DNA of 64,000 bases, from assembly GCA_030704615.1 (NCBI GenBank), contig CM060733.1, forward strand, positions 13,950,001-14,014,000. Direction: 5' to 3'. Made by a program: the position numbers and the translations under genes. The notes beneath the pieces are model-generated. The model saw only the letters and a list, made by a program, of their open reading frames with translations. It made no database searches and had not been told where the DNA came from. Numbering within the stretch: the stretch's first letter is position 1; every line of letters starts with the position of its first letter. Shown one piece after another: positions 12,697 to 51,339 of the stretch. The DNA is from Takakia lepidozioides. Lineage: Eukaryota; Plantae; Bryophyta.

Positions 12697-15023
12697 CTAT
12701 GCATCCCCCTTGACGATGCATTTTGCAGCATGTTCTGCTAACTCCACATAGCCATGGATTCTGCAGGCACCAAGCAAGGCCCCCCACACAAAACCATCTG
12801 GTTCCATTGGCATTTTGTTGATAAAGTCCTCTGCCTCATCCAATCGTCCAGCACGGCCAAGAAGGTCCACCATGCAGCCAAAATGCTCCGGTGCAGGTTT
12901 GAGGCCATGATCTTGAATCATAGATTCAAAGTAGTGACTGCCTTCATCCACCAGGCCCACATGGCTACATGCAGAGAGAACAGATATGAAAGTGATACCG
13001 GTCGGCGTCAAGCCTTCCTGTTGCATTTGTTCAAATAGTTGCAGGGCCTCTTTACCACACCCATTTTGGGCACATGCTGTGATCATCGCACCCCATGACA
13101 CCACATCTCTTTCAGCCATATTGTCGAACACTTGACGTGCATCCCTCACGCTGCCGCATTTGGCATACATGTCAATTAGGGTGTTCTCCAACTTCGTACA
13201 TGATGCAATTCCGGATTTGATGATGTCAGCATGAACCTCTATGCCCTTTACCAGAGCTCCCAGACTGGCACACACATTGAGAATGCAAAGGAACATGACA
13301 CTATCAGGCGTAACCCCTTCTTGCTGCATTTCTTCATAGATTTTGAGAGCCTCCATACCACTCCTGTGCTGGGCACATCCTGCCATCATCGCACTCCATG
13401 AGACCACATCTCGCTTAGCCATATTGTCAAATACTTCACGCGCATGCTTTACACTTCCGCATTTGATATACATGTCAACAAGGGTGTTCTCCAAGTTGAT
13501 GTATGAGGCAATACCAGCTTTGATGATGTCAGCATGGACCTGCTTGCCCTTTTCAAGGGCTCCTAGGCTGGCACATGCATTGAGGATACAAATGAAGGTG
13601 ACCTTGTCTGGTATCAGGCCTTTGTGTTGCATTTGTTCATAGAGTGTGAATGCTTCCATACCACATCCATGCTGGGCATATCCTGCAATCATCACACTCC
13701 AGGATACCACGTTTCGCTTGCCCATATAATCAAACATTTGATGTGCATCCTTCATGCACCCACATTTGGCATACATGTCAACAAGAGCCGTCTCCAAAGT
13801 AATCTCTGGTCCCATTACAGCTTTGATGATGTCAGCATGGACCTTTTTGCCCTGTTGCACAGTTCCTAGGCTGGCACAAGCATTGAGAATGCAAATGAAT
13901 GTCACCCTGTTGGGAATCAGCCCTTCCCATTGCATTTGCTCGTACATCTTGAAAGCTTCTGTACCAAGCCCATGCTGGGCATATCCTGTGATCATGGCAC
14001 TCCATGAGACCACATTTCGTTTGGCCATATTGTCGAACACTTGACGTGCATCCTTTATGCACCCACACTTGGAATACATGTCAACAAGTGTGTTCTCCAA
14101 GTTTACATATGATGCAATTCCAGCTTTGATAATATCAGCATGAACCTCTTTGCCCTTTTCCAGGGCTCCTAGGGTGGCACATGCATTGAGAATGCAAATA
14201 AATGTGACCCTGTCAGGTGTTGGCCCTTCCTGTTGCATTTGCTCATACATCTTGAAAGCCTCCCCACCACACCCATGCTTAGCATATCCTGCTATCATGG
14301 CATTCCATGAGACAACATCTCGTATTGCCATACCATTGAACACTTGATGAGCATCCTTCATGCTCCCACATTTGGCATACATGTCGATAAGGGTGTTCTC
14401 CAAATTAATATATGACACAATTCCAGCTCTCCTGATGTCAGCATGGACCTTTTTGCCCTTTTCCAGATCTCCCAAGCAGGCACATGCACTAAGAATGCAA
14501 ATAAATGTGACCTTGTCAGGCATCACCCCTTCATGTTGCATTTGTTCAAAAAATTTGAAACCCTCCTCAGCATTCCCATATTTGTTATATCCTGCCATCA
14601 TCACAGTCCATGTAAACATATCTCGTTTGAGCATTCTGTCAAATACTTGGCGTGCATACACCAAACTCCCACACTTAGCATACATGTCGATAAGGGTATT
14701 AAGTAGACACATGTTTGGCTCAAGTCCCCTTTGGATGATGTGGGCGTGCACCTGCTTTCCCTTTGCTAGGTCTTTCGTATTGATGCACTCATGCAGGAGA
14801 GAGATGTAAGGATTCAAGTCTTCCCGAAGGGCTCGGTGGTTCAAAATGTGTGACAGATCTTTCAATTCTCGTCCCTTAGATATTGTCCTCACATAAGTGC
14901 CAGAATAGTCATTATTGACTCCCTCGCTTGGTCCTCTTTCGAACGTGGTGATGGTGGAGGGTGTGACCCATGCCACCAGTCTGATGGCCGACAAATACTT
15001 GTGCCTTATTGAACCCTGCCATC
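12697..15023 (-). CDS. PLS-class PPR protein 1 (truncated in E domain; start/frame problem at the 5' end)
   Basis: Uninterrupted PLS triplets (xVVSWxAMIxGYAQHG, VTFICILNACA, NTLVDMYAKCG) and E1 (VWGALLGACRIHG). The paralogous ATG at 15022 is out of frame with the tract because of 1 extra nt at ~14971. Confidence 0.85.
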
Positions 15024-15213
15024 CTGCATAAAATTCCCTTGAACACAAACTCACAAGATACTAGCAGATACTTGAAAAAAAGATCCCTCCTGGATGACAG
15101 CTTGTCATAATTATAAACAAAGTTCAAAGCCTACTGCAATCATCCACACTGAGAACAAATTGTACCAGCTCCCTCTATTTGAGCTCAAACCCTTTCTTTG
15201 TCACAGGAAATAC

Positions 15214-15385
15214 CCTTTGCATTCTTGAAGTGAAACTCCCTCGAGAGTAGATTCATCACCAGATTGCGCTCGCATTGTACCATGGCAGCTAGCTCTGCTT
15301 TTATCCATTGGGCATTCCACAAACTGTCAATCGAATAGACCTCATTGGCAAGCTCATGTCTGATATCCGGTGATCTTAGAAGTTT
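15214..15385 (-). CDS. OSB-type PDF motif, second half-exon
   Basis: After CACAG|, it reads KLLRSPDIRHELANEVYSIDSLWNAQWIKAELAAM. This matches the OSB PDF consensus KxPxxPDFKHKxTxEALWI..P.WV..EL. Confidence 0.6.
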
Positions 15386-15588
15386 CTGTGAATCCAGGAG
15401 TGGCCTGAGCAGCCATAGCTTCAACCACAGCCTCCAATAGACCATGCTACTACAACCACCAAAGCTTCCCAGCATCTTTCAATTGACAGGGAACATCCAT
15501 CATGCCCTGCTATGCGAGGATGAACAACCTATTGATAACAACAGTAGGAAAAAATGTCATTATTTTAGGAGAATACAGTTGGCCTCAT

Positions 15589-15655
15589 CTTCTCAGACCT
15601 GCTGTCCCACCACTGCAAAGGGTCTGACATGAACTGTTCAATTCTTACTCGTTTC
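15589..15655 (-). pseudogene. OSB-type PDF motif, first half-exon (donor apparently mutated GT>AT)
   Basis: EQFMSDPLQWWDSRSEK followed by ATGAGG. The paralogous exon at 25657 ends DK|GTGAGG. Confidence 0.6.
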
Positions 15656-15689
15656 TGCAGTAAACACCAGCTCCTCGTTGGCTTTCCAC

Positions 15690-15693
<4 letters not shown>

Positions 15694-23451: not shown

Positions 23452-25305
23452 CTATGTGGCCAAGTACTTTGGATCTTGCTTACGACAACCTTTTAGCGAA
23501 CATTCTGCCAGCTCCACATCTCCATGAATACTGCAGGGCAAGTAAGCCAGCAGCTGCTTTGATTCACTTGCAGCTTGCCGTGGATCCAAGTTGAGAAGGC
23601 ATTTTGCTGCATGTTCTGCTAGCTGCACATTGCCATACATTCTGCAGGCACTAAGCAATGCCCTCCACACCCTAGCATGTGGTTGGATTGCCATTTTGTT
23701 GATGAGTTCCTCTGCTTCATAGAATCTCCCTGCACGGCCAAGAAGGCCCACCATGCAGCCAAAATGCTCCACTGTATGAGTCAGACCATGATCACGACTG
23801 ATGGAATCAAAGAATTGACAGCCTTCGTCCACTAGGCCCACATGGCTACACGCAGAGAGAAGAGATAAGAAGGTGATCACATCCGGTTTCAAACCTTCCT
23901 GCTGCATTTGTTTGAACAAATGCAGTGCCTCCTTCCCACAGCCATGCTGTGCACATCCTGCAATCATAGCATTCCATGAGACTACATTTCGTTTTTCCAT
24001 ATTGTCAAACACATCCCACGCATCCTTCATGCTCCCACATTTTGCATACATGTCAGTGAGTGCTGTCTCCAGAATGATATCTGGTTCAATTCCAGATTTC
24101 AAGATGACAGCATGGACATCTCTGCCCTTTTCCAGGGCTCCCAGGATGGCACACACATTCAGAATGCAAGTAAATGTTACCCTGTTGGGCAGCACCCCTT
24201 CCCCTTGCATTTGTTCAAACAATTTCAGGGCTTGCGTGCCACACCCATACTGAGCATGTCCTGTGATCATGGCATTCCATGATACCACATTTCGTTTAGC
24301 CATATTGTCGAACACTTGATGTGCATCCTTCATGCTACCGCATTTGGCATACATGTCAGCAAGTGCCGTTTCCAAATTAATATCAGTAGCAATGCCAGCT
24401 TTTATGATGTCAGCATGAACGTCTTTGCCCATCTCCACGGCTCCCAGGCTCACACATGCATTTAGAATGCACATGAATGTCACTGAGTTAGCCATCACCC
24501 CTGCCCCTTGCATTTGCTCATAGATCTTGAAAGCTTCCCTGGCACACCCATGCTGAGCATATCCCGCAATCATGGAATTCCATGAAATCACGTCTCGTTC
24601 AGCCATGGTGTTAAACACTTGACGGGCATCTGTTACACTCCCACATTTGGAATACATGTTGACAAGGCTATTGTCTAAATTGATATATGCAGCAATTCCA
24701 GCTTTCACAATGTCAGCATGGACCTCTCTGCCCTTTTCGAGGGCATCTATGCTGGCACAAGCATTGAGGATACCAATGAATGTGACCTTATCAGGCATTA
24801 CTCCTTCCCGTTTCATTTCTTCATAAATACTGACAGCCTCGCTCCCACACCTTTGCTTGGCATATCCTCCTATCATTATATTCCATGTGAACACATCTCG
24901 TTCAGGCATTTGGTCAAACAATCGACGTGCATCCACCACGCTCCCACATTTGGCATACATGTTGACAAGGGTGTTGAGCAGAATGATGTTTGGGGTGCAT
25001 CCACTTTGGATGATGTGGGCATGCACCTGCTTTCCCTCTACTAGGCCTTTCAAGTTCGCACACGCCTGCAAGACACAGACATACGTCATGGAGTCTGCCC
25101 GAAAGCCTCCTTGATGCATAATGTGGATTGCCTCTTTCAGTCGTCCTGCCTTACATAGGATCCTCATATCCCTACAAGTGCCAAGTGGGTTTTTATTGGG
25201 TCCCTCTTTCGGTCCTCTTTTACAAGCAGTGGTAATGGTAGGGTTGCTAACCCAGCCACCACTCCAATGTCCAAGAAACAACTGTGCCTGATTCAACTTT
25301 GCCAT
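23452..25305 (-). CDS. PLS-class PPR protein 2 with E1 and a duplicated partial E segment, no intact DYW
   Basis: 617-aa intact ORF starting MAKLNQAQ, with PLS triplets and VWRALLSACRMYGNVQLAE. A second degenerate copy (CSIHGDVELAE) precedes the stop. Confidence 0.9.
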   Translation of the reverse strand: MAKLNQAQLFLGHWSGGWVSNPTITTACKRGPKEGPNKNPLGTCRDMRILCKAGRLKEAIHIMHQGGFRADSMTYVCVLQACANLKGLVEGKQVHAHIIQSGCTPNIILLNTLVNMYAKCGSVVDARRLFDQMPERDVFTWNIMIGGYAKQRCGSEAVSIYEEMKREGVMPDKVTFIGILNACASIDALEKGREVHADIVKAGIAAYINLDNSLVNMYSKCGSVTDARQVFNTMAERDVISWNSMIAGYAQHGCAREAFKIYEQMQGAGVMANSVTFMCILNACVSLGAVEMGKDVHADIIKAGIATDINLETALADMYAKCGSMKDAHQVFDNMAKRNVVSWNAMITGHAQYGCGTQALKLFEQMQGEGVLPNRVTFTCILNVCAILGALEKGRDVHAVILKSGIEPDIILETALTDMYAKCGSMKDAWDVFDNMEKRNVVSWNAMIAGCAQHGCGKEALHLFKQMQQEGLKPDVITFLSLLSACSHVGLVDEGCQFFDSISRDHGLTHTVEHFGCMVGLLGRAGRFYEAEELINKMAIQPHARVWRALLSACRMYGNVQLAEHAAKCLLNLDPRQAASESKQLLAYLPCSIHGDVELAECSLKGCRKQDPKYLAT

Positions 25306-25656
25306 CCTGCACCACTCCAGACTCTTAGTTAAAGACCTCCTTTGTGCACTTATGTCTTGGAGTCTGGGATATTTCTATGAAAACCATTAGTGTGCAGCTA
25401 AGCATTGATGGCTTCAACTATAGTCTGCATTGAGAGACCACCAAAGCCAGCTATCTTTCAATTAACACGGAACAATCTCCACCAACCTACCTTCATCCCC
25501 TGTAAGAACAACCCACTGCTTTTGACTATAGAGCAGAAAAAAATACATTAATCTAAGCAATTGGAGATGTAATCTGGTTACAAACATCGTCTTAAAAGCT
25601 TCAGTTAGAAGCCTCCTCGATGAACTCTTTCATGTCACAACCGAAGACAGCCTCAC

Positions 25657-25735
25657 CTTATCAAGCCTGTTGTCGTGCCACTGTGAAGGATATCACCAGA
25701 ACTCCTGCCAAGCCAATCTGTGCCAGTTTCTTGAC
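25657..25735 (-). pseudogene. OSB-type PDF motif, first half-exon upstream of PPR2
   Basis: TGCAG|G-SRNWHRLAWQEFW*YPSQWHDNRLDK|GTGAGG, with one in-frame TGA. The downstream intron (25410-25475) is homologous to 15418-15495. Confidence 0.65.
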
Positions 25736-26892: not shown

Positions 26893-27505
26893 TCAGTCCG
26901 GGAATAGATAGCACCTTAAGTGTGTCATGGCCCACACCGCAGCTAAGCACTCCCCCTCATATGAGCTATACTTAGACTCTGCAGCGTTGTTCGAGCGGCT
27001 AGCATAAGCCACTACGAACTCTCTTATCTCATCATCCACCTGTGTGAGCACCGCTCCAAGCCCCAGCATGCTCCAATCCGTATGCAACTGAAAGAGACGC
27101 CCCCCGATAGGTCGTCTCAGGATAGGCGCTGAGGTCAACCTCGCCTTGAGCTCTTGAAAAGCTCGGTCCTGCTCATCTTCCCACTGCCACTCCTGGTCCA
27201 CCTTGGTCACCTTGGTTAGAGCTTTTGTAATGGCACTAAATCTCCAAGCCCAGCATGCTCCAATCCGGATGCAACTGAAAGAGACGCCCACGATAGGTCG
27301 TCTCAGGATAGGCGCTGAGGTCAACCTCGCCTTGAGCTCTTGAAAAGCTCGGTCCTGCTCATCTTCCCACTGCCATCCTGGTCCACCTTGGTCACCTTGG
27401 TTAGAGCTTTTGTAATGGCACTAAATCCCTTGACAAACCGTCTATAATAGTTTGTCAATCCCATGAAAGCTCGAACTCGGCCTATATCCGTGGGGCGTGG
27501 AATCT
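26893..27505 (-). mobile_element. Ty3/gypsy pol fragment (RT-RNase H) with an internal ~187-bp tandem duplication
   Basis: VRAFMGLTNYYRRFVKGFS, FQLHTDWS, VVAYASRSNNAAESKYSSYEGECLA. 27054-27242 is repeated at 27242-27427. Confidence 0.85.
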
Positions 27506-31447: not shown

Positions 31448-34400
31448 GTTTGGCGAGACTAAAGTTTGTTCTTTAGTTAATTAAGATGGAAGACACCTTT
31501 GCGGAAATGGTCGCCACATTGCAGAGTCTTCGGTTCCAGATGCAAGAACTTCGTACCTCTATCGCCCAATTGCAAGCTGATCAGTCTTAAGATCTTGACA
31601 ACGCTCTCCACAATTTGCAACAACAAATTTCAGAGTTAAAAGAGTCGAATAATAGATCTTCAACCATACGAGTCTCTACCGCAACAGCTCGTACTACAAC
31701 GGTTTCTCTTCAACAGATTACGAGAGAATCAAAGATCAGCATGCCCGAGAAATTTGATGGGACGAGATCAAGATTTCGCGGTTTTGTTCAATAAGTATGA
31801 CTGTTCCTACGATTACATCAACAACGCTACCCCGATGAAGGTATTTAAGTGGGATTCGTGGGCACTCTTCTATCAAGCACTGCCCTATCTTGGTTTGCAC
31901 TGCTATTAGAAAAAAATTCGCATTTACTATATAATTTTGAAGCATTCATATCCGAGTTCACTGCAACGTTTGGAGATAATGATAGAGCAAGAGTTGCAGA
32001 GACAAAGATGCGAAATCTTTGACAACGAGCACGTCCTGCTTCCGTTTATGCAGCCGAATTTCGACAACTTACGTGCGACCTCCACTGGAATGAGAAGAGC
32101 CTCATTAGTCAGTTTAGATGTGGGCTAAAAGATGTTGTAAAAGATTTGTTGCTGACAATGCCAAACGTGAGTATACTGAGCGAATTCATCACCCAAGTCA
32201 TTGCATGCGATAATCGCTTGTTCGAAAGACGTCAAGAGAAGCGATCTGGATGGTCGACGACGCACCATGCCGCTGCTACTACAGCACCAAACACAACGAT
32301 CCATCAGACATCCGGTAATGATCATATGCAGATTGATGCTGTCCGATTCAAACCATTGACGTCACAAGAAAAACAAAGACGGCGCTCGAATGGATTATGC
32401 CTTTATTGCGGAGAAGATGATCACATAGCATTAAACTGCCCCAACAAGAGAAGATTCAAAGCTCGGGGCACAACTCAAGTGTTCGATACGAAAAGGTCGG
32501 AAAACAAAGATGTCCAGTCATAGTAGGGCATATTATTTTCAATGTCATCAAGTCTCCAACAAATCCTGTGATCCTTGGATTTCCCTGGTTTGTATTTCAT
32601 AATCTTGACATCGACTGACGATCACGAAAAATTTCGGCAAGACAAAAATATAAAAGTACCAAAGGTATTCAACCCATGTTTCTTGGAGCTAGAGCCTTCA
32701 TGAGAGCTATGAAGAAAGACGCAACATTTGCACTTTATGCGACTCCGATCAAAACCACAACAGACCAAGGTACTTCGACATTGCCCACTCAATATCAAGA
32801 TTTCAAGGATGTCTTCGAGAAGAAAAATGCAGACATGTTGCCAGAACATCGACCATATGATTGTGCAATTGAGTTGTAAGAAGGAGCTCAACCACCATTC
32901 GGCCCGATCTACAATTTATCTCAGACGAAGCTAATTGCTTTACGCGAATACATTGATGAAAATTTGTCAAAGAATTTCATTCGACATTCAAAATCACCCG
33001 CGGGAGCACTTATCTTATTTGTGAAGAAGAAAGACGGATCGTTATGCATGTGTGTGGACTATCAAAGTCACTATAAAAAATTGTTACCCACTGCTGCTGA
33101 TTTCCGGACTCCTCGAACAATTTGGACGAACAAATTTTTTCACATAGATCGACTTAAGAGGAGCTTACAATCTTGTACGAATAAAAAAAAGAAACGAATG
33201 AAAGACTGTTTTTCGCATAAGGTACGGACATTTCGAATACAATATTATGCCTTTCGGTCTTACAAATGCTCCAGCAATTTTTCAACACATGATGAATGAC
33301 ATATTTCGAGAATTTTTGAATGACTTTGTAGTCATCTATTTGAACGACATTTTGATATTTTCACAGAATGAAGAAGAACATGGTCGCCATGTACGCCTTG
33401 TCCTTGATAAATTGAGAGGAAAATGACTATATGTCAAGTTGGAAAAATGTCTTTTTCACCAATCTGAAGTCGAATTTTTGGGCTACATTATTTCTGACAA
33501 ATGAGTCTTTATGGATCAGAAGAAAATACAAACCATCATCGAGTGGATTAAACCAACTTCGGTCCGCGATGTACAATGTTTTCTAGGATTTGCAAATTAC
33601 TATAGAATCTTCATCAATGACTACTCCAAGATTGCTGCACCATTGACACAACTCACAGGAAATGACAAATTTGTATAGGACGAGAAGGCTGACCAAGCAT
33701 TTGAAAGGCTGAAGCAGACATTTACAACGGCTCCAATACTGGTACATGCAGATCCATCTAAACCATTTTTTTTGGAAGTAGATGCATCGGACTTTGCACT
33801 TGACGCGGTACTCTCTCAATATGGTACAGATGGCCGACTTCACCTTCTTGGTTTTCGTTCTTGCAAATTTTTCGCTGCGGAGATCAATTATGAAATCCAT
33901 GACAAATAACTTCTAGCGATTATCGATGCTTTTGAGGAGTGACATCATCTATTGGAGAGAGGTAAACATCAGATCACAGTCTATACTGATCACAAAAACC
34001 TCAAGTATTTTATGAGTGCTCATGTTTTGAATCGACGTCAAGCGAGATGGAGTATGTCACTAGCAAGGTTTGATTTTGTTATTACCTATCATCCCGGACA
34101 TCTTCAAGGAAAACTAGATGCTATTTCTCGACGATCGTATCTTGCGTCAAAAGAAATGATGTAGCTTTTGACCAACAGAAATCCATCATCTTGAAACCAT
34201 CAAATCTCCAATTGAATATGCTATCCATGTCCACCTATGATGATGTAGAGATCATAAAAGAGATTCAGGAAGCATTGAAGAGCGACAAATTTGCTACGAC
34301 ACTACGAAGTCAACTAAATCGACTTCGAGACAACCCACATGTTACAAACGACTTCGAATTCAAAGATGATTTATTTTATTTCAAGGGACTTCTCTATGTA

Positions 34401-35781
34401 CCTCCAGGACCTACACGACTTCGAATCTTCAAACATGTCATGATCTTCAAGCTGCAGGACATTTCGGCTTCAACAAAATAATGGAATTGATATCCAGGGA
34501 CTACTGGTGCGCAGATGCGGAAACTCGTGAAAGAATTTATAAAATCTTGCGACACGTATGTTAGAGCGAATGGACCACGACATCGACCTTACGGCCTTCT
34601 TCAACCATTACCCATTCCCAAGGGGCCATGGTCGTCCGTGTCTATGGACTTTATTACGGACCTTCCAATTTCCAAGACTACCGATTCAATCCTTGTTATT
34701 GTTGATCGTTTTACGACGATGACACATTTCATTCCATGTAATAAGACGGTTACCGGCGAGGATACTGCAAGACTCTTCATCAATAATACCTACCACATTC
34801 ATGGACTCCCTAAGGACATCGTATCTGATCGAGGACCACAGTTCATATCAAATTTTTGGAGGGAATTATTTCACATATTGGATATTAAGATCAACTTCTC
34901 TACAGCTAATCATCCACATACTGATGGTCAAACCGAACGTGTAAACCAAATTTTGGAGCAGTATCTTCGCTGTACGATAAATTATCACCAAGATAATTGA
35001 ACGGACCTTCTGTCATTGGCTGAGTTTGCCTACAACAACACTATACATTCTTTGACCAAGCAAACTTCATTTTTCTATAATTATGGTTATCATCCTCGAG
35101 CAAACCCCTTTCCACATGAAGACTGTTGGAAGCCCTGCTGCAGAAAACCTTGCTACTTATCTCGTTACGATTCACAAAGAGCTTACATTCCACCTCGCAG
35201 AAGCTCAAAAACAATACAAGGAGTATGCAGAGCAACGTTGTCAACTCCAACCCCAGTTCAAGGTCGGAGATCGTGTGTGGCTTCTTCGAGGGGACATACA
35301 AACCTCGCGACCATCAAGGAAGTTGGATCATCAACGTCTGGGACCATTCAAGATTATTCAACAAATAAATCAGGTCAGTTTTCGGCTTGAACTCCCACGA
35401 AGTATGCGCATCCATCCAGTCTTTCATGTTTTATTATTGGAGTTGTATCATCCATCGAATATTCCAGGGAGAGTCTCCGTATCACCTCCACCAATCGAAG
35501 TCAATCATGGAATTGAGTATGAAGTCGACGAAGTCCTAGACTCTCGCATCAAGTATAAACGTCTTGAGTATTTCGTACATTGAAATTGCTATAACATCAG
35601 CGAACGAACGTGAGAACCTTCATCCACCCTCGCCAATGCATCTGACAAAGTCCAAGGGTTTCATCAACGATATCGAGCTAAGGCCCAAGCTACACGTCAA
35701 TAAGACGTCACAACGATGATGTCAGCCACGTTAGCTTCAAGGTGAAGACTCCACATTCAATATACTTGATACACGTTAGAG

Positions 35782-38397: not shown

Positions 38398-41300
38398 ATG
38401 GCCATCAGAGGAGGCGGAAGGAGAGGTTCCTTCGGAGGTCTTGGCACTGCAGCTTCCAGTGTAGATGGGGCGTCGGAAGGAGGTCCTCATGCCGCGTCCA
38501 GGTAAGCTGACACTGTCACCGGGCCGGGCTGGGCCGCGCGTGGAGTTTGTGTGTGAGATTGTACAACCTCACAATGTTTGGGAGATTCTACAAATCAGAG
38601 GCAGTGATCTGTTGGAGCTGTTCTCATTCCTATGATGTCGTACCAAGAAGGGGCCATGTCACTAACATAGGCCTGTGTCTTTTCCTGGATGGTCTGGTCG
38701 TTCCATTGGATGTCATGGCAATTCGAAGGGGACAGGGGGAACTAAAACTGGTCAATAATTTCCATCAGTTTCACACCAGTAACAATTTAAGTAAATCTGG
38801 AATTAATAACGTTGCAGTAGGGTTTATCCAATGACCACGATTGCCACCTCACACAGTTTCGATTATGGGAAGACGTCAATTGAGCTTTCACTCCAAGTAT
38901 TGGGCCTTATTAACATCTGCGTGTTCTGCGACTTGTGGATTTTCCCTGTAATGATTCTTGAAGCCCAAGCAGACAGCAAAGTGGAACTTCTCTGCCCTCT
39001 GCATCGCAGAGAGAACGGAGCAGTCAAGTTATTTCGGTCTCGCAAGGACGTGGCAGAGGTGGCTACAATGCAGGCCAGGGACGGTCTGGACATGATGATG
39101 CATCTGGGTCCAGCACAGGGAGAGGGGGTGGCAGAGGTGGGAACAATGCCGACCAGGGAAGGTCTGGATATGAAGAGGCATCTGGGTCCAGCACAGGGAG
39201 AGGGGGTGGCAGAGGTGGCTACAGTGCCGGCCAGGGAAGGTCTGGATATGATGAGGCATCTGGGTCCAGCACAGGGAGAGGGAGTCGAGGGCACCATGGC
39301 GGAGGCCGGGAAGGGAGAAAAACAATGGACCCAATTGAGGCTCTTGGGCGGTGCATGTGAGATTCATTGCGCAACATTCTTATCATCACTTTGATTACAA
39401 GTGCATAGATTATTTGTAGTAACTCCTTTTCTTCATTAATTTGATCGTGTCTTCTTGATCTGCACAAGAGGTTTTCATCAGTGGGTCAGTGCTGGTGATG
39501 ACACAATATTTGTATAAGGTCCAGGTTAAGATTGCACTTCAACAAGTCAAGCTGGACTGAACCAGTGCTTGTTTTAACTTATCTTTTATCTTGAATGGAA
39601 TTTGAAGATTTCGGTTGAGATTTTTCAGGTCAGCAATACTACGGCATCAAGCTGCGGATTACAATATAGAAATGAAAAGTGATGGCTACGTCCTAGTGAG
39701 TGATCTGCTGAAACAAAGAAAAAACACTGCAGCTGGCATCCCACTATTTTCTCACACTGAAGATGATGTACGCAAGGTGATTTTCTTTCTGCCGCCCACA
39801 TACAAGTTTTCAAGTAATCTTATCTTGGATGCCAGGTTCATGTACATCCTATTTTGAAACTCCCCTTGATGTTTGATGAGTCCTTTCATGTTGTGGGCTA
39901 TGATCCAAGAAAGTAGATGGGGAGCCTTAGAGGTCTTGGCGTTTTGATACAGAAGGCTTTGGCCATGTGGCTGGTCACAACAGACATATTTGTGCACGAC
40001 ATAGATGCCACAGCTTAACTTTCTCATAGAAGATTCCATTTCAATGTAAGTAGTTCTGATTGCACAAGACACGACATGGTGCTGTAAATTTTTGTGGGCT
40101 GGATGTGGTTGCAGAAGATGGCAAACAGAGTAGTGGACTAGAAGACGCAGCATTGTGGCTGACTTGAAGTGGTGGGATGCAGGCTGTTGCAGAAGATAAT
40201 AAACAACGATTTGGATTGAAAGAAGATAACGGGGAATTATACATTAGGGCAGTGCAAGGACACACTATCAAGGTGAGTACACCGTTGTGATGTTGTTTAT
40301 CAGGCCCACCGTGGAACTGCTTGGTCCAACTTTTAGGTGTGTCATTGGGATTTACCATTGTTCCTCAATCCACCAGTTACTTTGTCATCTTTATGGCAGG
40401 GTTGAGTGTTCCAACTGTCAAATGACAAGGAGAAATTGCTATTGGGGCAGAGAGGACCTTTGTCACACTCCTATTTGAGCTCTATATTTTGGTACTCTTT
40501 GCCACAAACTGTACGTTCTGATGGTTAGAACTGTATTCTGCAGATTGTGGAATCCGAACATCTTCTGAAACCGATCACTGCTCCCTCAGAAGTTCCAGGT
40601 GAGTATCTTTTCAGGTGCATGTTAACTGCGGGCTTTGGCCATGGTCATCTGACTTTTTGTGCCAGAAAGCAATAGCTATCAGGTATAGAATGTGATGTCA
40701 GATGCTGCTAGTTTCAGTTGATAATGAAATGCTATGATCAAAAGTCAAACGGGGGGCCTTCACTGTTGCAAGTGATGAGTCCAATCACATACTATCCTTG
40801 GTGGGTGCCTTCTGGGTTTCACTGGAGAAATTCCGTTGTTTTCATGTAGGATTGTTTGAATTTACACACTATCTTAGAATTGAGAGCGCAGAATTAGTCT
40901 TGAGTGCTCTCTAACTTAGTGTGACCGGTGTTTGTCCCCTCCATTTGTCTTGTGACCATTTGCTGTGCTCTCAATATTGCAGTTTAGCTGTTCTGGAGAT
41001 GAGTTTAGACCCATCAGGACGGAGTGTTATTGTAAATCTTGTTTGCATGACTCCTATTACAGAATTGAATAGAATGGACTATGCATTATACTCACGTACA
41101 GTGGATTCAGAGGGCTCTTGGAACTCTTGTACAACTGCTAACATCAATGCTGTGGGTTGGTGGATGGAAGTTTGTGTCCATGGAACATACGTGAAATTCT
41201 TGGACAGTATATGGGAAGAGGGTTTGAAACGAATGACACGGAACCATATCCATTTTGCTACTGGCTTGCCCAAAGAGGATGGCATCATCAGTGGTATGTG

Positions 41301-43886
41301 CATCTTCGCATTTGAGAGGACAATCAAGGACCAAATTCTTCTCAAGTGTTTTGCTGCTCATGAGTACAGTGTAGGTGTTGTTTTCGCTGATAGATGTAGG
41401 ATTTCCTTCCTATGCCTTGCAAGTAGCTTTTTGCCTAGATCCGGAAACAAGCAGGTAGAATGATATGGGGTTTTCTGGCTTGGCATGGCTAGGTATGCGA
41501 GCTTCTGCTCAAGTTCTCATCTATTTGGATGTGGGGAAGGCTATTGAGGGTAGGTCAATCCCTGTTTTTCTAAGCTTGCTAGCTCATGTGTTTCAAAGGT
41601 GTTGTCCTTCCACCTATTTTCATATCTGCATGTGTTAACTGCTAGAGGATGTCTACAGTTTTATCACATTGAGTTCTTTCCAGCTTCTGCATTTTTATCT
41701 CAGGCCAATCCTTTCATGCTTTTAAGACCCTTCTCTGACTCACATCTGTAGGTGAAGCCAGCAAGTTCACAGATCATTTTGCCCAAATCCTCTTATTGTT
41801 TTCTTCATCCATCACTCCAAAAGTTCTACTTCTTAGCAGAAATAATGCGAGGTAGTCATTCCTTGGCTACCATTACTACTGATTCAGGCAAGCTGATTGC
41901 AGATTTAACATTTGTACACGCAGCCTTCTTAGTGTATGTATGTATTCCCTGTGAAATGTCCGAATTTATTTGCGCAGATGGGATGAAGCTCTACATCTCA
42001 GAGAACAAGGTGGTACTCACTGAAGGTTTTAATGGAGCTATCCCAGCCAAGTACTTCAAGAAAGTCATAAAGAGGCTGCGAGATGGCACAGAAGTTTCGC
42101 TGATTCCACCACATGATCGATTGGCACCAAACATTGCAGCAGAGGCAAAAGTAATAACTTTGCATATAGATTTTGATCACCACTAGTGATTTGTGGATTT
42201 CGTTCTTTAGCTACAATGCAAGAGTACTACAGGGTTTAGGGGATATGCGGAAACTATGCTGCTTAAGATCTTCTCTGTACTTGTCGTCTTTGCCACAAAT
42301 TTTAGCTTCTGAGAGGACAGTGCTGTAAATTGCAGGCTGAACACCCGATCACATCTCCCTCAGCAATTTCAGGTAATTGACTTCTTTATCGTTTTTATTT
42401 TCCCAACTAGGAGCACCTACCAGGCCCCCTTATTGCAACGCTCATCTTTCTGTTTGATGCCAGGATGCTAGTTCCTCGTGTGTGGTGTCACGGCCGCCTG
42501 TTATAGGTCCATTTATGAGGTGCCAGGGGCAGGAGTCTGCCTTCACTTTTGCATAGGAGAAGGTCAATCACTAATGATAACCGGCCAATTATTCATGAGC
42601 AAGCCCTCTGTCCGTATCTTCTCCCATATCTTCAGCCATGAGCAGAGACTCTCGTCCGTATCCGTCGCATCTCAATCAAAAGGCCAGTGTATGTTCTGTA
42701 ACAGATTTGTGGAGATGGATTACCTGCGGGTCAAATGGCTCATCATTCCTCTCCACTCATAGGCTACCTAGTTAATATTTGGTGGGATGTCTTTCTGCAA
42801 AGCCGTCTGATGTTTCAGACCACATTGTATTGAGACTTTGCAGAAGTATTCTTGAGTTGTTCAAACCTTGTCATACTAGTGTTGATTAATTGTCTTCCTC
42901 CTTTTTCTGTTAGGCTATGTTTCTACTATCATCATCCAATCCCTGGACGAGGTCTGATACCCACAAGGACACATTGCCATAGAAGATGAAACTGGCATCT
43001 TGCCTATGATTGCCCAGAGCATATTATTGTAGGCACCCTTGCAAACCATTGTTAGTATGAACAGGAAATTCAGAGACCACCTTGGAATTCTCACACAACT
43101 GCTTAACATCAATACTGTGGTTTGTTGGATGATAGTTTGTGTTTATTGCACAAATGAGAAACTGTTGAAGAGTATCTGGGAAGAAGGCTTGAAAATATCG
43201 AAAGACAAACGCATCCATTTCGCTTCTGGCTTGCCCAAAGTGGACTGCAGCACCATTGGTATGTCCCTCGTTGCAAATGTAGAGGGTATTCTGGGCCCCA
43301 ATGCAAGTCAACGTTATTGAGTACACTTAGGTGTTGTTTTATGTGGACATTCCTCAGGTGTCAGAAGCAATTTGAGGTTTTCATTATTCCTGTCCCTTAG
43401 AAGCTCCTTCATTCTGAAGTGCGGAACAAAAGCGAGGCAGCCTAATGTGAGGTGTTTTGGATTGCCATGGTGTAGGTATGCGGGGGGCTGCTCAGGTTCT
43501 TATCTATTTAAATGTGGAGAAGGCCTTTGAGGGTATGAGAATGTTGTTGAAACTTTCTTCCCCATGGTTTTTGGTTGTTTATCATAAAAGTTATACATGC
43601 TGGCAGAATTGATGGAAGGTATCATTGTATGGGCACTACAACTGCTGATTCTGGCAAGTTCATTGCAGATTTGACAGTTCTATACAGCATGATCTTAGAA
43701 GTGTACAACTTCATGTGTGCAGATGGGATGAAGCTGTACACCTCAGATAAGGAGGTGGTCACCGAAGGTTTTGATGGAGTTATTCCAGACAAGTATTTTA
43801 AAAGAGTCATAAGGAAACTACCAAACGGTGGAGAAATTCCGTTATTTCCTCCTCGGCAGGCACGGAACAGTGCAGCAGATGCTTGA
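38398..43886 (+). CDS. TPT1: tRNA 2'-phosphotransferase (Tpt1/KptA) with an RGG-repeat N-terminus and a duplicated C-terminal NAD+ lobe
   Basis: Exons 38398-38501, 38964-39356, 39629-39776, 40183-40272, 40544-40598, 41171-41293, 41493-41549, 41978-42150, then duplicates 42336-42372, 43136-43258, 43476-43532, 43723-43886. Motifs: DPIEALGRCMSAILRH, SDGY, DNKQRF, IRAVQGHT, VCVHGTY, GLKRMTRNHIHF, GMR, SENKVVLT. Confidence 0.88.
39050..39283 (+). repeat. 3 x 78-bp coding tandem repeat (RGG/Y/S-rich)
   Basis: The unit encodes GRGGY(N/S)AGQGRSGYDEASGSSTGRGG in the spliced Tpt1 frame. Confidence 0.85.
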
Positions 43887-45661
43887 AGGTCTGATGATTA
43901 AACCAGAGGTGATCGAGGGCTGGAAGACTACTAAAAGTTCCAGCAATGATCTTGGTCATGACAAGGTGTTTTATTTACCAAATGTCTTCTTTGTGAGAGA
44001 TTCACCTTAGGCTAAGGTACTGCATTTGTGACAAGATTCTAAACCAGACTTAATGGAAGTCACAGAGGAGAGGTGAAGAAAATGTAGGTCTATGATCATC
44101 CATTTTACTGGTGTCAATCTGGGCAGTAGTTGAACGGTTAAAGATGCGCTTGAAGTTGTCCTTGCTTTGGTGCTCATATTAAGTTTCAAGTTTTCTATCT
44201 TCAGAGGGTGTGCAAGCATTTAGGGTGTATGTCCTCTGTAGTTGGGTTTCGGCTTACATTCAGATGTCCCTGAACTCTAGGGGGGAAATTATAAGTCAGG
44301 TCAAGAAAAATTTCAGCAATGGATGGTATCAGCATATGTAATCAGACAGAAACAGAATATAGTTTCTATACTACATGATCTCCTCACTTTCATTAGATCA
44401 GGACAAATGTACAGAGCAGCGAGTTGACTACAGAAATGTGCATCCCCTGTCCAGGGCATGACAAGGGGAGCGGTTGAGGAGGTCGAGTCTGCAGATTGAG
44501 ATGAAGGTGTCCACCTACTCCAACTGGTGCAGCATCAGCTCTAGACAAAATACACAACATATTTTGATGTCCTTACAAGGATGGCCCATTTTGTAATACA
44601 CTAGCCATAGTGCGGAATCAGTTCTAGCTAGAGGACATGAGGCATTACAGCTATAGAGTCGAAATCTTGCCTTAGATTTTGGGTTTCTCTGCAGAAGATC
44701 CTCATTGAGAAAGTGCAGAGGATCTGCTTCAGATCATATTTTGCAGGAGCTGAAGAACCGTACGCACATGTGATAGGTTGGTGAGTTGCATATTACTGAT
44801 GCAATCAAAGGAGAGATTGAACCTCGGAAGTGAATATTGTAATTTTTGAGGTTGTAAAGTATCATCAGAACATGGGAATTGTCCATATTTTGGTGGTTGT
44901 AATTATTGCTGGAGAAGGCTAAAGCTTGTGGAATGGCTGCACAATGCAAACATTTAGTGAGAGATTACCATATCTTTCTGCACGCAACTGTGAGATTATT
45001 TGTAATAAAGGAAGAACAACTTCTACATCCACGGGAGGAGGAACTATTTAGTGGCATCAAAGAGAGAGAAAGAAAGGAATGGGGATGGATGAAGTAGAAC
45101 AGTACAAGAGAGAAACATGGAGTGGTTTGTTCCTTATAGGACAAGTACTCTATTGTCATCTCTTAGAACTGAGGGTTGTAGCTCAATTAATTGCTTGACC
45201 GTAGCTGGTGCCCTGAGCATGGCCAGCCCATGTGAAAGAGGGGACACTCTGCTGAAGAGTGAGAGCTGTAGGTGTCCCTGCATGTTCTCTTTGGGAGATT
45301 CATGATTCATCACAGCCAGAATCCAATGGCATTTATCGTCTCACAAAACTTCTTCCTGCTTTCAGTAGCAACTCCTACATTTTCAGCGATTCTGATTGTC
45401 ATGACAAATCTAGTCCTCCTGTTACGAGCTCAAAACGCCAAGTAGGCTGCGAGCATAAAGTGACCATTCCCAGAAATTTGCAGATTGCCATCCAGAACTG
45501 CTCCTTTCAATCTATCAACCTCTGACAAGGCCTGACCTTGATGTGCCGTATGGTAAATATCATTTCCTATAACTTTACTCGTGACTTGCAAAAATAATGG
45601 GAAATTGTCACTTTCTGTACTTGTGTCTGAAGTGATGTACTCTCTTTTGTGCATGTTCTTG

Positions 45662-48287
45662 TCACCAGTAATCCCCACAAGAACAAACCCCATCTTTGAA
45701 ATGGTGGAAGCGGTTGGCATCCCGTACAATTATTGCTCGCCCAACAATCTTTGAGATGCACTTGGTGGCAGTATGGCAATCCCCACAAACCCGAAGGTTC
45801 TTGATGAGGCGGAGGGCTGTCCTAGGGGGTGTGCTGATAAGCCCAAAGGCAATAGCCAGCTTCTCACTGTGGTGGCAAAGAGAAAGTTTCTTATGCTCCT
45901 CCTCCACATCATGCAATACATAGCGCATGTCAGGCACGTATCCAGCCTCCTTCATCTGTCTAGATAATCTGTCCAGCTCCGTGCGAATTTCCTCAATTTG
46001 TGGATGCAGTTGATCGTCTACAACAAAAGTATGCACATGGTTGTCCACACCAATGCAGCAGTACCCTGGCTCCTTTCTGATACCTCTCTCATGCATCATT
46101 TTTCTCACCTTTGCAGTATCGTCCCACCTGCCAGCCGCAGCATAGATGTTCGAGAGCTGCAGATAAGTTGCAGCTTGCTGGGGATCCAACTTGAGAAGGA
46201 ATGTTGCCGCATGTTCTGCTACCTCCACACTGCCATGAATCCTGCAGGCACCAAGCAAGGCTCCCCACACCATAGCATCTGGTTCGATTGGCATTTTGTT
46301 AATGAAATCCTCTGCTTCATCCAATCGCCCTGCCCGGCCAAGAAGGTCCACCATGCAGCCAAGATGTTCCACTTTAGGGGTGAGGCCATGATCTCGACTC
46401 ATGGAATCAAAGTAGTGAAAGGCTTCATCCACTAGGCCCACATAGCTGCAGGCAGAGAGAACACACGTAAATGTAATACAATCTGGCTTCAAGCCTTCCT
46501 GTTTCATTTGTTCAAAGAGTTGCAGGGATTGCATACCACAACCATGCTGAGAATATCCAGCGATTATAACATTCCATGAGACCACATTTCGTTGAGCCAT
46601 AGTGTCAAACACTTGACGCGCATCCTGCATGCTCCCACATTTGGCATACATATCAACAAGGGTATTCTCCAAATTTATGTATGACATGATTCCAGCTTTG
46701 ATGATGCTAGCATGGACCTCTTGGCCCTTGTCCAGGGCTGCCTGGCTGGCATATGCATTGAGAGCGCCAATGAAGGTGACCTTGTCGGGGGTCACCCCTT
46801 CCTGTATCATTTCCTCGTAGACATCAGAAGCCTCCCTACCACACCCATGCTGAGCATATCCTGTAATCATTGCATTCCATGAGACCACATTTCGTTTAGC
46901 CATACAGTCAAACGCTTGACGAGCATCCTTCATGCTCCCACATTTTGCATACATGTCAACAAGGGCAGTCTCCAGAATGATATCTGGCACAATTTTAGCG
47001 TTGATGATGTTAGCATGGATCTCTTGGCCCTTTTCCAGGGCTGCCAGGCTGGCACATGCCTTGAGAGCACAAATGAATGTGACCTTGTCAGGCGTCACCC
47101 CTTCTCGTTTCATTTGCTCATACATCATCAATGCTTTCCTACCACACCCATGCTGAGCATATCCTGCGATCATGGCATTCCATGACACCACATTTGGCTT
47201 TAGGCCTTCCCGTTGCATTTGTTGAAATAATTCCAGGGCCTCACTACCACACCCATGCTGAGCATATCCTGCAATAATTGCACCCCATGAGAACACATCT
47301 CGCCTAGCCATATTGCTGAACACTTGATGGGCATCCTTTATGCTCCCACATTTGGCATACATATCAACCAGGGTGTTCTCGAGAATGATATCGTTAGCAA
47401 TTCCAGCTTTGAATATGTTGGCATGAACTTCTTTCCCCATATCCAGGGCTGCCAGGCTGGCACATACATTGAGCGCGCAAATGAACGCGACCTTGTCAGG
47501 TATCACCTCTTCCCGTATCATTTGCTTGTACATCTCGAACGCCTCCATATCCCACCCATGCTGGGCATATCCTGTGATCATCACACTCCATGAGACCACA
47601 TTTCGTTGAGCCATTTTGTCAAATACTTGCTGCGCGTCCTCCATGTTCCCACATTTGGCATACATGGCAGCAAGGGCAGTTTCCACCATGACATCTGGTG
47701 CAACTCCAGCTTTGATGATGTCAGCATGAACCTCTTTGCCCTTTATCAGGGCTCCCAGATTGGCACATGCCTTTAGAATACAGATGAATGTGATCTTGTT
47801 GGGAGTCAATCCTTCTCGTATCATTTGCTCATAGATCTCTAAGGCCTCCCTACTACACTTATGCTTGGCATATCCTGCCATTATTGTATTCCAAGTAACC
47901 ATATCTCGATCAGGCATTTTGTCAAACACTAGGCGTGCATCTACCAAACTTCCGCACTTGGCATACATGTTGACAAGGGTGTTAAATAAAAAAACATTTG
48001 GCTTGAATCCACTTTCAATAATGTGGGCATGCACCTGCTTTCCCTCTGCTAGGCCCTTCATCTTGATGCACTCCTGCAAGAGACACCCATAAGTACTGGA
48101 GTCTGCAAATATGCCTCCTTGGTTCAAAATGTCCAGTGCCTCTTTCAAATGACCTGCCTTACATAGTCTCCTCACATTCCCGCAAGTGCCAGAAGAGTTA
48201 TTGTTGACTGTTTGTTCTCTCTCAAAAGCAGTGGTCGTGGTGGAGGTGCCTGATTCAAAGAACTGTGCCTGACACAACCCTGCCATC
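45662..48287 (-). CDS. PLS-E1-E2-DYW PPR protein 3 (C-to-U organellar editing factor type)
   Basis: Intact ORF from the ATG at 48286, with PLS triplets, E1/E2, PG box KEPGYCCI, HHSEKLAIAFG, KNLRVCGDCH and terminal CSCGDYW. Confidence 0.95.
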
Positions 48288-48626
48288 CTGCATGACTCAA
48301 AACTCTTAATTATAACCACTAACATGTCAAACTTAAAGAACAAATCTCAAAGCTCCCATATTCTCCAAGAAGCATCAATTCATGAGGAGAGGCTCTTCAA
48401 AAATAATAGCAATGTGCATTTCTAAGGCGCAATTTTTCTGCTCCATCTCAGTATAGAGGGAACAAAATCACAGCCACTTAGACAAACATATAAAAACTCT
48501 GCTCAGTTGGATCTCCCCTCATGCAAATTCCAATTAAGTACGTAGCAATTTCCAAACACCACCCCTTGTAGAAACCCATCTCCCTCTGTCGGTCGATCTC
48601 TCTTTGGTAGGACAACAATAGCTTAC

Positions 48627-49063
48627 CAGCTACGAACATCTGTCTTAGCATCAGTCTTTCGCACAGCAAGGCTAGATTTCGCCAACACTTTTCCAGTATC
48701 TAAGTATCTGATCTCCATGTCACGGTCCACACGGCCAATGAGGTGGACGGTGTTGGCAATTACCTTGCTGAATGTGACCGCGGGCCCTCGCTCATCCCCC
48801 TGCTCATAAACCCCGTCCTCTTCGACTCTTGGCTCGAAAGTACTTGAGAAGAATTTGAATGCAATGCGGTCTGGAAAATGCAGAGGGGTGGACAACGTGC
48901 ACACCCCACACCCTCTGGAATCTTTCAGCCCAGGGCCAGCAACATAACCTCGGGGGGCCTTGTGAGGCCACCCCCACATGCCCGGATGCCGTTCCTGGAC
49001 GGAAGTGAAGAAGGTAGGCATGTCCCCCACAAGTGCCATGCTTCTTGCAGCATCAACCGTCAT
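48627..49063 (-). CDS. OSB: First coding exon of an organellar ssDNA-binding protein (OSB-type): presequence plus N-half of the OB fold
   Basis: ANTVHLIGRVDRDMEIRYLDTGKVLAKSSLAVRK...SW, ending in a TG|GTAAGC donor. No second OB-fold exon was recognised in the window. Confidence 0.8.
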
Positions 49064-49839
49064 GTCTGCTCCAAATCAAACCTAATTTGAGAAATTCTTC
49101 TCGGTTCTGTAGAAAGAGATAGATCAGGGCGAGCTTAGCCGCCTCCAACACCGACGATTCCATAGTCGAGTCTCAAGCATCAAGGTGAAGGCCATGCTCT
49201 ACACGAAGATTCGATGCTCTTCCATACTCCAAAGGCCAACTGGCAAAGGAGGAGGACTCAGCCTGCGATACCCGGAAATTCACCGGGCTCTCCACATGGA
49301 TGTGGATGGATGAGGACTGCGTCCGGGGCACTGTCTTTCCCACCAGTCGATCTAGTCGCCATCGATGGTTACAATTCATCCATGTGTCTTTCTGATTCTG
49401 TCTGTGGGCCTATTTGATAAAAAACACAATGATAAATAGAAAACAGAAAAAGAAAAAGAAAAACGAGAGAGTGCGGCGTGTATTGAAGACAGATACGAAA
49501 TACGGTGGCTCGTGTGTGGAGCACGGAGCCGCAAAGACGTGTGGAGCGATGGGTTTCCGACTGGCCTGGAGATTTGTAGGTAAAGCTGCCCTGGGAGCGT
49601 CAGAACTGGGTATATGGGATAATTCACGGTACGGGGTCTGTTTCAAATACTTAATGCTTATTTAGGTGGTGCGCATTGGTTCCACGTCGGTTTTAGTTGC
49701 GTAGATTACATTAAGTGTCCCTTCTGACACACACTAATATTTTGGTCAGATCTGGTCGGTCGTTTTCTGGCTGGATTAAATGCAGCTGGACTCTACCCTC
49801 TCGTTCCCTGATCAAATCACTTCTTACAACTTGAACATA

Positions 49840-50080
49840 CCGTACTTACCTAGTAGCTTACTAGGCACTTCCGGGCCTAAAAATTAATAAAAATAGAATA
49901 TTATTAGGCAGATTCGTTTTTATTATTTAGGCACCTCACCTAAGTAATTTCCAAACATTAAGCATGTATTACAGTCGACCCTGGATATTTTTATTTTTAA
50001 ATTTTACAGTCTACAGTGGATAATGAACAATTGTTTTTGACCTCCCTCAATAACTATTGTTGAGGTAATTTTCTCTTAAA
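49840..50080. mobile_element. Second copy (inverted; other end not located) of the MITE at 1-346
   Basis: TA|CCGTACTTACCTAG..., followed by ~200 bp reverse-complementary to ~150-346. Confidence 0.7.
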
Positions 50081-51339
50081 AAAACATAATAGTTTTGAAA
50101 ACAATTAACTTACATCTTCATAAGTCTCATCACCTATCTAATGTGAATCTTCTCAAAAACAATTGTTTAACATATTTTAGTGTAAGATAAACCATTCTAG
50201 ATTCCTCAAAAATGGGGTGATCCTAATGTGAGTCCTTTTTTATAGTGGCATTGAAAATTGACCATGAACAAAGTACATAATCATTAGATTATGGACTATG
50301 ACATTTTACTAAGGACATTTTAAAAAGTCCTTAATTTTCAATATACTTAGTATTTTGAAATGAAACTTGAAAGAGTGGGTGAAGCCTCTAGTGCATATTA
50401 TCCTTTAGAGTCCTTTATTCAAATATTGAAGAATGTGAATATATACCATTAGTCTATGTATAGGAAAAATTGTGTTATGACAGCCAAAAATGGACACTAT
50501 AGGCTGCAACGACCCTGAAAGAACCTTTTTGCACATCACATGAATACATAGTCTCCACTGTGCCAAGTCCTCTGTTCCCCTTCATTAATTTCGCCACTTT
50601 GTGTTCCTTCTCTTCAGGCTGAAGCTTGCGCTTCTTCTTTCCCTTCTCCCCTTATCATTTTGTTGATTGATCATAGTCAACAAATGTACATCTGATTGAT
50701 TCAAAATATTATAGTGTCATGGTTTTGTTTGTGATTAGTTAGATTTTTTTTTTTAAATTGAAATTATTGAGAGGAAAAAAATTAAAACCCCGTTGTCGGA
50801 AATAGTTATTTCTAACTAATTAGGACATTATACATTTATATTTGTATTTTGTTGGCATTGGGACTTCATTTGGTTTCATGTGCCAAGTGAGGTGGCGAAC
50901 CTCATTTGGGACGTGGAGAGGTTATCTCCACGTGAGACGTAGGCAGGCTCGTCTTCTTTTAGTCGAGCCTCCTGAGGCCTCTCTCGCCGCCATAGCTCTA
51001 GTACTTGAGATGGAGAGTGGGTGAGGTCTGTATGGTGGAGTCCTTTAGCATAGGTGTCATTGGCTTGACTTATATAACGTGATAGAGTGGTTTCTCCTCT
51101 TTTCACCATTTCCGTATCATTGTGGCGTGGCTTTCTAGGACTATATGCTAGGACGTGTGGTTGGACAGCGATGTATGTTGTGGCACGATGCTTAGGTGCA
51201 CGACAATAGTTTGTCTTAGTCCTCCTAGACTATGTGTACGTAAGCAGGGCATCCCATGACACGTGGCTTAGTTTGGTTTTTCACAAGAGATTTTTTCGTA
51301 AGGATTCATATCTGAGTTTTGCTCTTATCAGGGAGCGAT

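Follow-up and report, generated by a model that had tools for sequence, protein, structure and literature searches.

In Takakia lepidozioides, the exon of the PPR gene PPR3 is transcribed together with an upstream exon that is, judged by its homology, OSB-derived, and the two are spliced into a single transcript, whose 5' part takes in the OSB ATG (contig reaching 49113). The joint 48764^48287 is the dominant splice form in two studies and leaves the OSB frame out of register with PPR3; a 1020-aa fusion as the main product is unsupported. The locus, within the 64,000-nt stretch of DNA that was analysed (the window), is best explained, at a credence slightly better than even, as a chimeric transcription unit in decay, which would be an OSB/PDF-PPR-DYW derivative without its middle exons.

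Table 1 Features of the PPR3 locus and of the neighbouring PPR genes. Positions are those of the window.
Feature	Positions	Strand	Remarks
First exon in RNA-like contigs	48764..49113	-	X1 record 6; 5' end at least this far out (a start is not shown by contigs)
OSB-derived exon 1, reading frame	48627..49063	-	Leader and N-terminal part of OB fold, with signs of decay
Alternate-frame ATGs 48807, 48795	48766..48807	-	Put in PPR3 frame by the donor used (889 or 885 aa)
Intron used, 476 nt, GT-AG	48288..48763	-	Donor AAG/GTAATT, phase 0 in OSB frame
Intron of the sequence-only reading, 339 nt	48288..48626	-	Putative ancestral OSB intron-1 donor, phase 2; without RNA support
Acceptor and ATG block, 12 bases	48281..48292	-	Identical in all three PPR genes of the window
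Stop ending OSB frame in spliced RNA	48255..48257	-	110 aa; 29 nt past PPR ATG
PPR3 exon	45662..48287	-	874-aa open frame; ~18 PLS motifs, E1-E2, DYW with HSE and CxxC
Degenerate PG box	46049..46069	-	S, W, E replaced by C, C, G
Transcribed 3' region, likely 3' UTR	44992..45661	-	X1 record 2, X2 record 9
PPR2	23452-25713	-	Ends in E1; stop in PDF exon A
PPR1	12697-15690	-	Ends early in E1, without DYW

Splice donor used in RNA-like contigs

On the minus strand, a 146-codon frame opened at 49063 ends TG/GTAAGC at 48627, and the acceptor TGCAG/G-ATG stands at 48288/48287; joined for frame arithmetic only (the OSB exon and the PPR3 exon were searched separately), they give a frame of 1020 aa without a stop. 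The sequence-only reading had taken this GT-AG intron of 339 nt as the splice that fuses the OSB exon to PPR3. Its donor, acceptor and intron are confirmed in the DNA, as is the frame of ~1020 aa, open through DYW with 0 stops; the splice itself is not the one found, RNA-like contigs using the donor 48764 instead. The fit in frame is weak evidence for a fusion, because a random phase match is expected 1 in 3 times and both phases appear ancestral.

Two runs from different studies (X1 and X2) cover the locus; their label as RNA is a guess, and they were read as contigs only. Both look like transcriptomes, with 33-49 Mb of contigs, a GT-AG joint and zero depth across the intron and at 49275-49835. 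The joint was read directly in X1 record 6 (607 letters, depth 13), in which 48763-49113 (351 letters) is joined to 48031-48286 (256 letters), with 2 substitutions and 0 gaps relative to the locus. In X2 it was deduced from depth arithmetic: record 15 runs 31 letters past the acceptor, and 31 x 3.1 / 187 gives 0.51, the depth of bin 48714-48900. The donor used lies 137 nt upstream of 48627, and the acceptor 48287 is common to both models. Locus-exact contigs were also present within the PPR exon and in the ~670 nt past its stop.

Depth was 0 at 48340-48713 in both runs, which includes bin 48527-48713, obligatory for an exon ending at 48627, and no spliced sequence 48627^48287 was present in the contigs of either run, an outcome that the sequence-only reading had itself named as refuting it. 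Contigs show presence, not absence, since rare isoforms drop out of assemblies; given this and the low depth (13 in X1, 3 in X2), a minor in-frame isoform may exist. A common 48627 isoform is unlikely, because the assembly would branch where X1 record 6 runs unbroken.

X1 depth at 48714-49087 exceeds that of record 6 by ~4-5 in two bins. To judge from depth, the excess would come from another short contig, either an allele or an expressed paralog of the OSB leader, which is not among the matches listed. At the other end of the locus, contigs coming from the left end at 44980, and the 3' contig of PPR3 ends at 44992; the former are probably from a Tpt1-like gene on the plus strand, and the convergent transcripts may nearly abut. 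Exons of a Tpt1/KptA 2'-phosphotransferase (PF01885, second lobe repeated) lie at 40921-43886 (+).

Origin and state of the OSB-derived exon

OSB proteins combine an OB fold with PDF motifs (PMC6963530). The assignment of exon 1 to this family rests on OSB matches down to E 4.5e-11, with the OB part matched by 16 of 17 phmmer proteins (45-69% identical to the matched OSB proteins) and with residues 104-136 matched by Pfam SSB (model positions 2-34 of 104). Like OSB genes, the locus has this exon 1 sequence and a phase-2 intron in an SW codon: exon 1 ends at SW with TG/GT in eight genomic OSB loci (Riccia; a moss-like Logan contig; six peat-metagenome loci), bacterial SSB loci (L014 onward) being left out of the comparison. 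By this comparison, 48627 is the native, ancestral donor of OSB intron 1 (phase 2). Donor 48764 looks derived, because its codon (101; Val here) is Asp or Glu in 12 of 15 OSBs, and Val in 0 of 15; the position is E in the six genomic metagenome loci, and one transversion from GAA would create the donor. The donor scores are 6/7 for 48764 and 5/7 for 48627.

Unlike OSB genes, the locus lacks exon 2, the remainder of the OB fold and every PDF motif, and its dominant RNA drops most of the OB fragment. With an incomplete OB fold and no PDF motif, it would not be classed as an OSB gene. The fragment itself shows signs of decay: its FPRP motif is eroded by a short deletion, and D113 stands where homologs have G. 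That no other OB-fold continuation exon follows downstream, as the sequence-only reading had it, agrees with a search of the window by an exon-2 HMM, which found none (best score 6.4 bits, versus 2.5-3.5 for nulls and 90 for the control). No PDF match was found between 45662 and 49113, and no remnant of OB exon 2 or PDF in the intron. A faint OB-like match before PPR2 (26077-26000, 1.2 bits) did not survive the exon-2 HMM.

Outside the window, an ESM Atlas search returned short SSB fragments only; homolog searches with the PPR3 leader and with the OSB exon, weak with queries so short, returned nothing and no close paralog; and no protein of the window had an exact match in the protein collection. 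No PPR gene was found near the eight genomic OSB loci of other bryophytes and peat metagenomes, the downstream DNA being short in three.

Capture of the OSB exon by a transposon found no support, there being no inverted-repeat termini bracketing the exon. Upstream of it, an AT-rich dispersed repeat is found at 49838-50167 and 113-348 (77% identity); the copy at 49838-50167, which holds a perfect 15-nt inverted repeat (50026-50040/50153-50167), is possibly a small transposon. A candidate site-II-like motif GGCCCA is present at 49405-49410 (-), beside a pyrimidine tract (49480-49420); this combination is typical of promoters of plant genes for organellar proteins.

The exon could still serve PPR3 if donor 48627 were used at a low level or conditionally, giving a 1020-aa protein imported by way of the OSB leader, with the newer donor lowering the dose. 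The intact, apparently ancestral donor, the open joined frame and the inability of contigs to prove absence speak for it, as does a KFF-SS stretch kept in the leader, which lines up with RCF-SA and RYF-SA in OSB homologs and resembles, with R changed to K, the mitochondrial -3R cleavage motif. Weighed against these are the empty bin 48527-48713 in X1 and X2 alike and a record 6 that passes without a break through the two points at which a common second isoform should split the assembly; moreover, the leader carries 5 acidic residues in 75 (0-4 in homologs), and the OB fragment is decaying and spans only a third of the Pfam SSB model. We regard this use of 48627 as unlikely.

Coding consequences and state of PPR3

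Starts at 49063, 49039, 49021 or 48979 on the RNA spliced at 48764^48287 give at most 110 aa; only the ATGs at 48807 and 48795 and the PPR ATG (48286) are in frame with PPR3. Upstream of 48807 there are six ATGs, of which one (49039) is in strong context and four open a frame overlapping the PPR ATG. Under the rules of scanning and of plant NMD, an early stop with a long 3' region leaves little downstream protein. With such a stop and 3' region and six upstream ATGs, the spliced mRNA should give little PPR protein and is an NMD candidate. The sequence-only reading had PPR3 capturing the promoter, presequence and half OB fold of an OSB gene; the OSB-led transcript bears out part of this, and the borrowing of the presequence finds no support, since a targeting peptide is not passed on across a joint that is out of frame. 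By composition, neither PPR3's own leader nor the alternate leader resembles a targeting peptide (basic, acid-poor): both have a net charge of 0 in 40 aa, versus +1 to +5 in OSB homologs.

PPR3 itself is a PLS-E-DYW frame by profile and alignment. Its PPR code would read nUYnAGnUnUnAUnYUnn, with the C to be edited after three further bases. Like the PLS-DYW C-to-U editing factors Physcomitrium PPR56 and Arabidopsis OTP86, it has PLS triplets, P2-L2-S2, E1-E2, HxE/CxxC and a terminal DYW, the DYW domain matching PF14432 over 1-93 of 93 (E 6.5e-44). Unlike factors of the PPR56/OTP86 type, it has a degenerate PG box, no credible targeting peptide of its own and an OSB-derived first exon. The description of the PPR-DYW as intact thus fits the reading frame and the HxE, CxxC and DYW motifs and fails at the PG box, where PG is kept and C743, C744 and G746 stand in place of the S, W and E that 89 homologs have at 93, 90 and 96%, replacements seen in 0 of the 89. 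The PG box supplies the deaminase with its first two strands (PMC7611903) and helps to build the substrate pocket (PMC11897456). Over the C-terminal part, PPR3 departs at 12 of 89 conserved columns (median 5), a number reached by 7 of 89 homologs. Decay of PPR3 is suggested by these departures. Among the differences listed between PPR3 and same-species paralog contigs, a biased list, 18 are non-synonymous and 13 synonymous, a ratio below neutral expectation that suggests past purifying selection.

A functional editing factor would also be obtained if the OSB exon were a mere 5' leader and PPR3 were translated from 48807, 48795 or 48286, by leaky scanning, re-initiation or shorter transcripts. 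The donor used does put 48807 and 48795 in the PPR3 frame, which is open and expressed along its length, and S828 of OTP86, the counterpart of C743, is inhibitory rather than catalytic (PMC7611903). The same transcript, however, sets six upstream ATGs before these starts, among them the strong 49039 and the four with frames overlapping the PPR ATG; neither N-terminus is targeting-like, and W744 and E746 are missing from the PG box. Translation of a working PPR3 from such starts is likewise improbable in our judgement.

Probable descent of the locus in the PDF-PPR-DYW family

The acceptor block has 3 exact matches in the window and 4 with one mismatch (0.57 expected); PPR2 and PPR3 go on matching over 25 nt of the intron. 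PPR1 and PPR2 are preceded by decayed PDF exons. At PPR1, the donor of exon A is gone (GT to AT at 15588), exon B lies at 15388-15281, and the frame is shifted past the ATG by a 1-nt insertion near 14970; at PPR2, exon B appears to be cut after a few codons by a deletion. The PDF introns of PPR2 and PPR1 are homologous (score 95; background ~24). A candidate resemblance of the PPR3 intron to the PDF intron before PPR2 (score 38) was rejected, as it ties with three unrelated windows of 718. Fragments of LTR retrotransposons, judged by eye from ORF text (RNase H, integrase, chromodomain-like), were noted at 26893-27324 (-) and 32146-35583 (+).

Among the 120 best homologs in other species, 17 have PDF modules ahead of the PPR array (Diphasiastrum, Calypogeia, Ceratodon, JGI contigs); an OB part was found in none of the 120. 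The junction between PDF and PPR varies in this family: in Ceratodon P0083 (L003), a phase-2 intron precedes the PPR exon, and in Calypogeia P0038 (L004:2713-5883), the second PDF half and the PPR array share one exon, with no intron there. PPR3 resembles these PDF-PPR(-DYW) genes (Ceratodon P0083; Calypogeia P0038; Diphasiastrum) in bearing OSB-derived 5' sequence on a PLS-DYW exon, the Ceratodon gene in its phase-2 acceptor, and the PDF-bearing PPR1 and PPR2 in its acceptor block; unlike them, its locus is without a PDF module and keeps a leader and half an OB fold. The PPR3 exon and its phase-2 acceptor share descent with PDF-PPR-DYW genes, as far as alignment can tell, and with the acceptor block common to three PPR genes and phase 2 in Ceratodon, the acceptor phase can be old. 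No published description of OSB-PPR fusions or PDF-PPR genes was found in a literature search with poor coverage of subscription journals; the paper that gives T. lepidozioides 2,016 PPR genes (PMC13386178) has no mention of OSB or PDF by term search.

In the reading preferred here, that of a chimeric unit in decay, the ancestor would have been a leader-OB-PDF-PPR-DYW chimera, which later lost whatever exons separated OSB intron 1 from the PPR exon. Since both flanking introns are phase 2, loss of everything between them leaves exon 1 in frame by default, and the remnant would have stayed so without selection. Transcription runs through the OSB-derived first exon, which is spliced onto the PPR3 exon. 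Donor 48764 would then have arisen by substitution at the conserved acidic codon, in one change if that codon was GAA, and, fitting the consensus better, may outcompete the ancestral donor. In the dominant form, its use removes most of the OB fragment and breaks the frame, leaving 110 aa from the OSB ATG. Little targeted PPR3 protein would be made, the mRNA would be a candidate for NMD, and the gene would drift to a pseudogene like PPR1 and PPR2.

Against decay it counts that the 146- and 874-codon frames are both still open, unlike those of PPR1 and PPR2, that the transcript is detectable despite its early stop, and that the listed 18:13 differences are below neutral. Against exon loss stand the lack of any lost-exon remnant in the intron and of an OB part in the 120 homologs. 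Exon loss from an older OSB-PPR chimera nevertheless seems somewhat likelier than a fresh capture by PPR3.

The sequence-only reading had likened the locus to rps14 of grasses, which lies in an intron of an intact sdh2 and gained its targeting peptide by way of an in-frame alternative mRNA (PMC1543663). The likeness extends to one promoter and to a passenger exon placed after exon 1 of an organellar-protein gene; unlike rps14/sdh2, the locus lacks both a complete host gene that makes an alternative product (OSB exon 2 is absent from the window) and another productive mRNA, and its observed joint is out of frame. That PPR3 lies in intron 1 of a complete OSB gene with exon 2 further on is very improbable: 48627 is indeed the native intron-1 donor by comparison, but no exon 2 follows within 48 kb downstream, native intron 1 spans ~0.2-0.7 kb in the loci read, other genes intervene, and the exon is decaying.

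A perfect in-frame GT-AG fit is here not the splice used, which corrects a tempting gene model. As a chimeric unit in decay, the locus would show in small how members of a very large PPR family arise and decay, an editor having been cut off from its targeting exon by what is likely a one-base gain of a donor. A further hint from the locus is that a fusion with a whole OSB gene stood at the start of the PDF-PPR-DYW family, a matter on which intact members at other loci weigh more than the PPR3 copy. A working editor under a splice switch, with the ancestral donor giving the targeted 1020-aa protein in some condition and the newer donor diverting most transcripts into an unproductive form, is a quite doubtful reading; if true, it would mean that the PPR family recruits promoters and targeting exons of OSB genes and tunes or silences editors by one-base splice changes.
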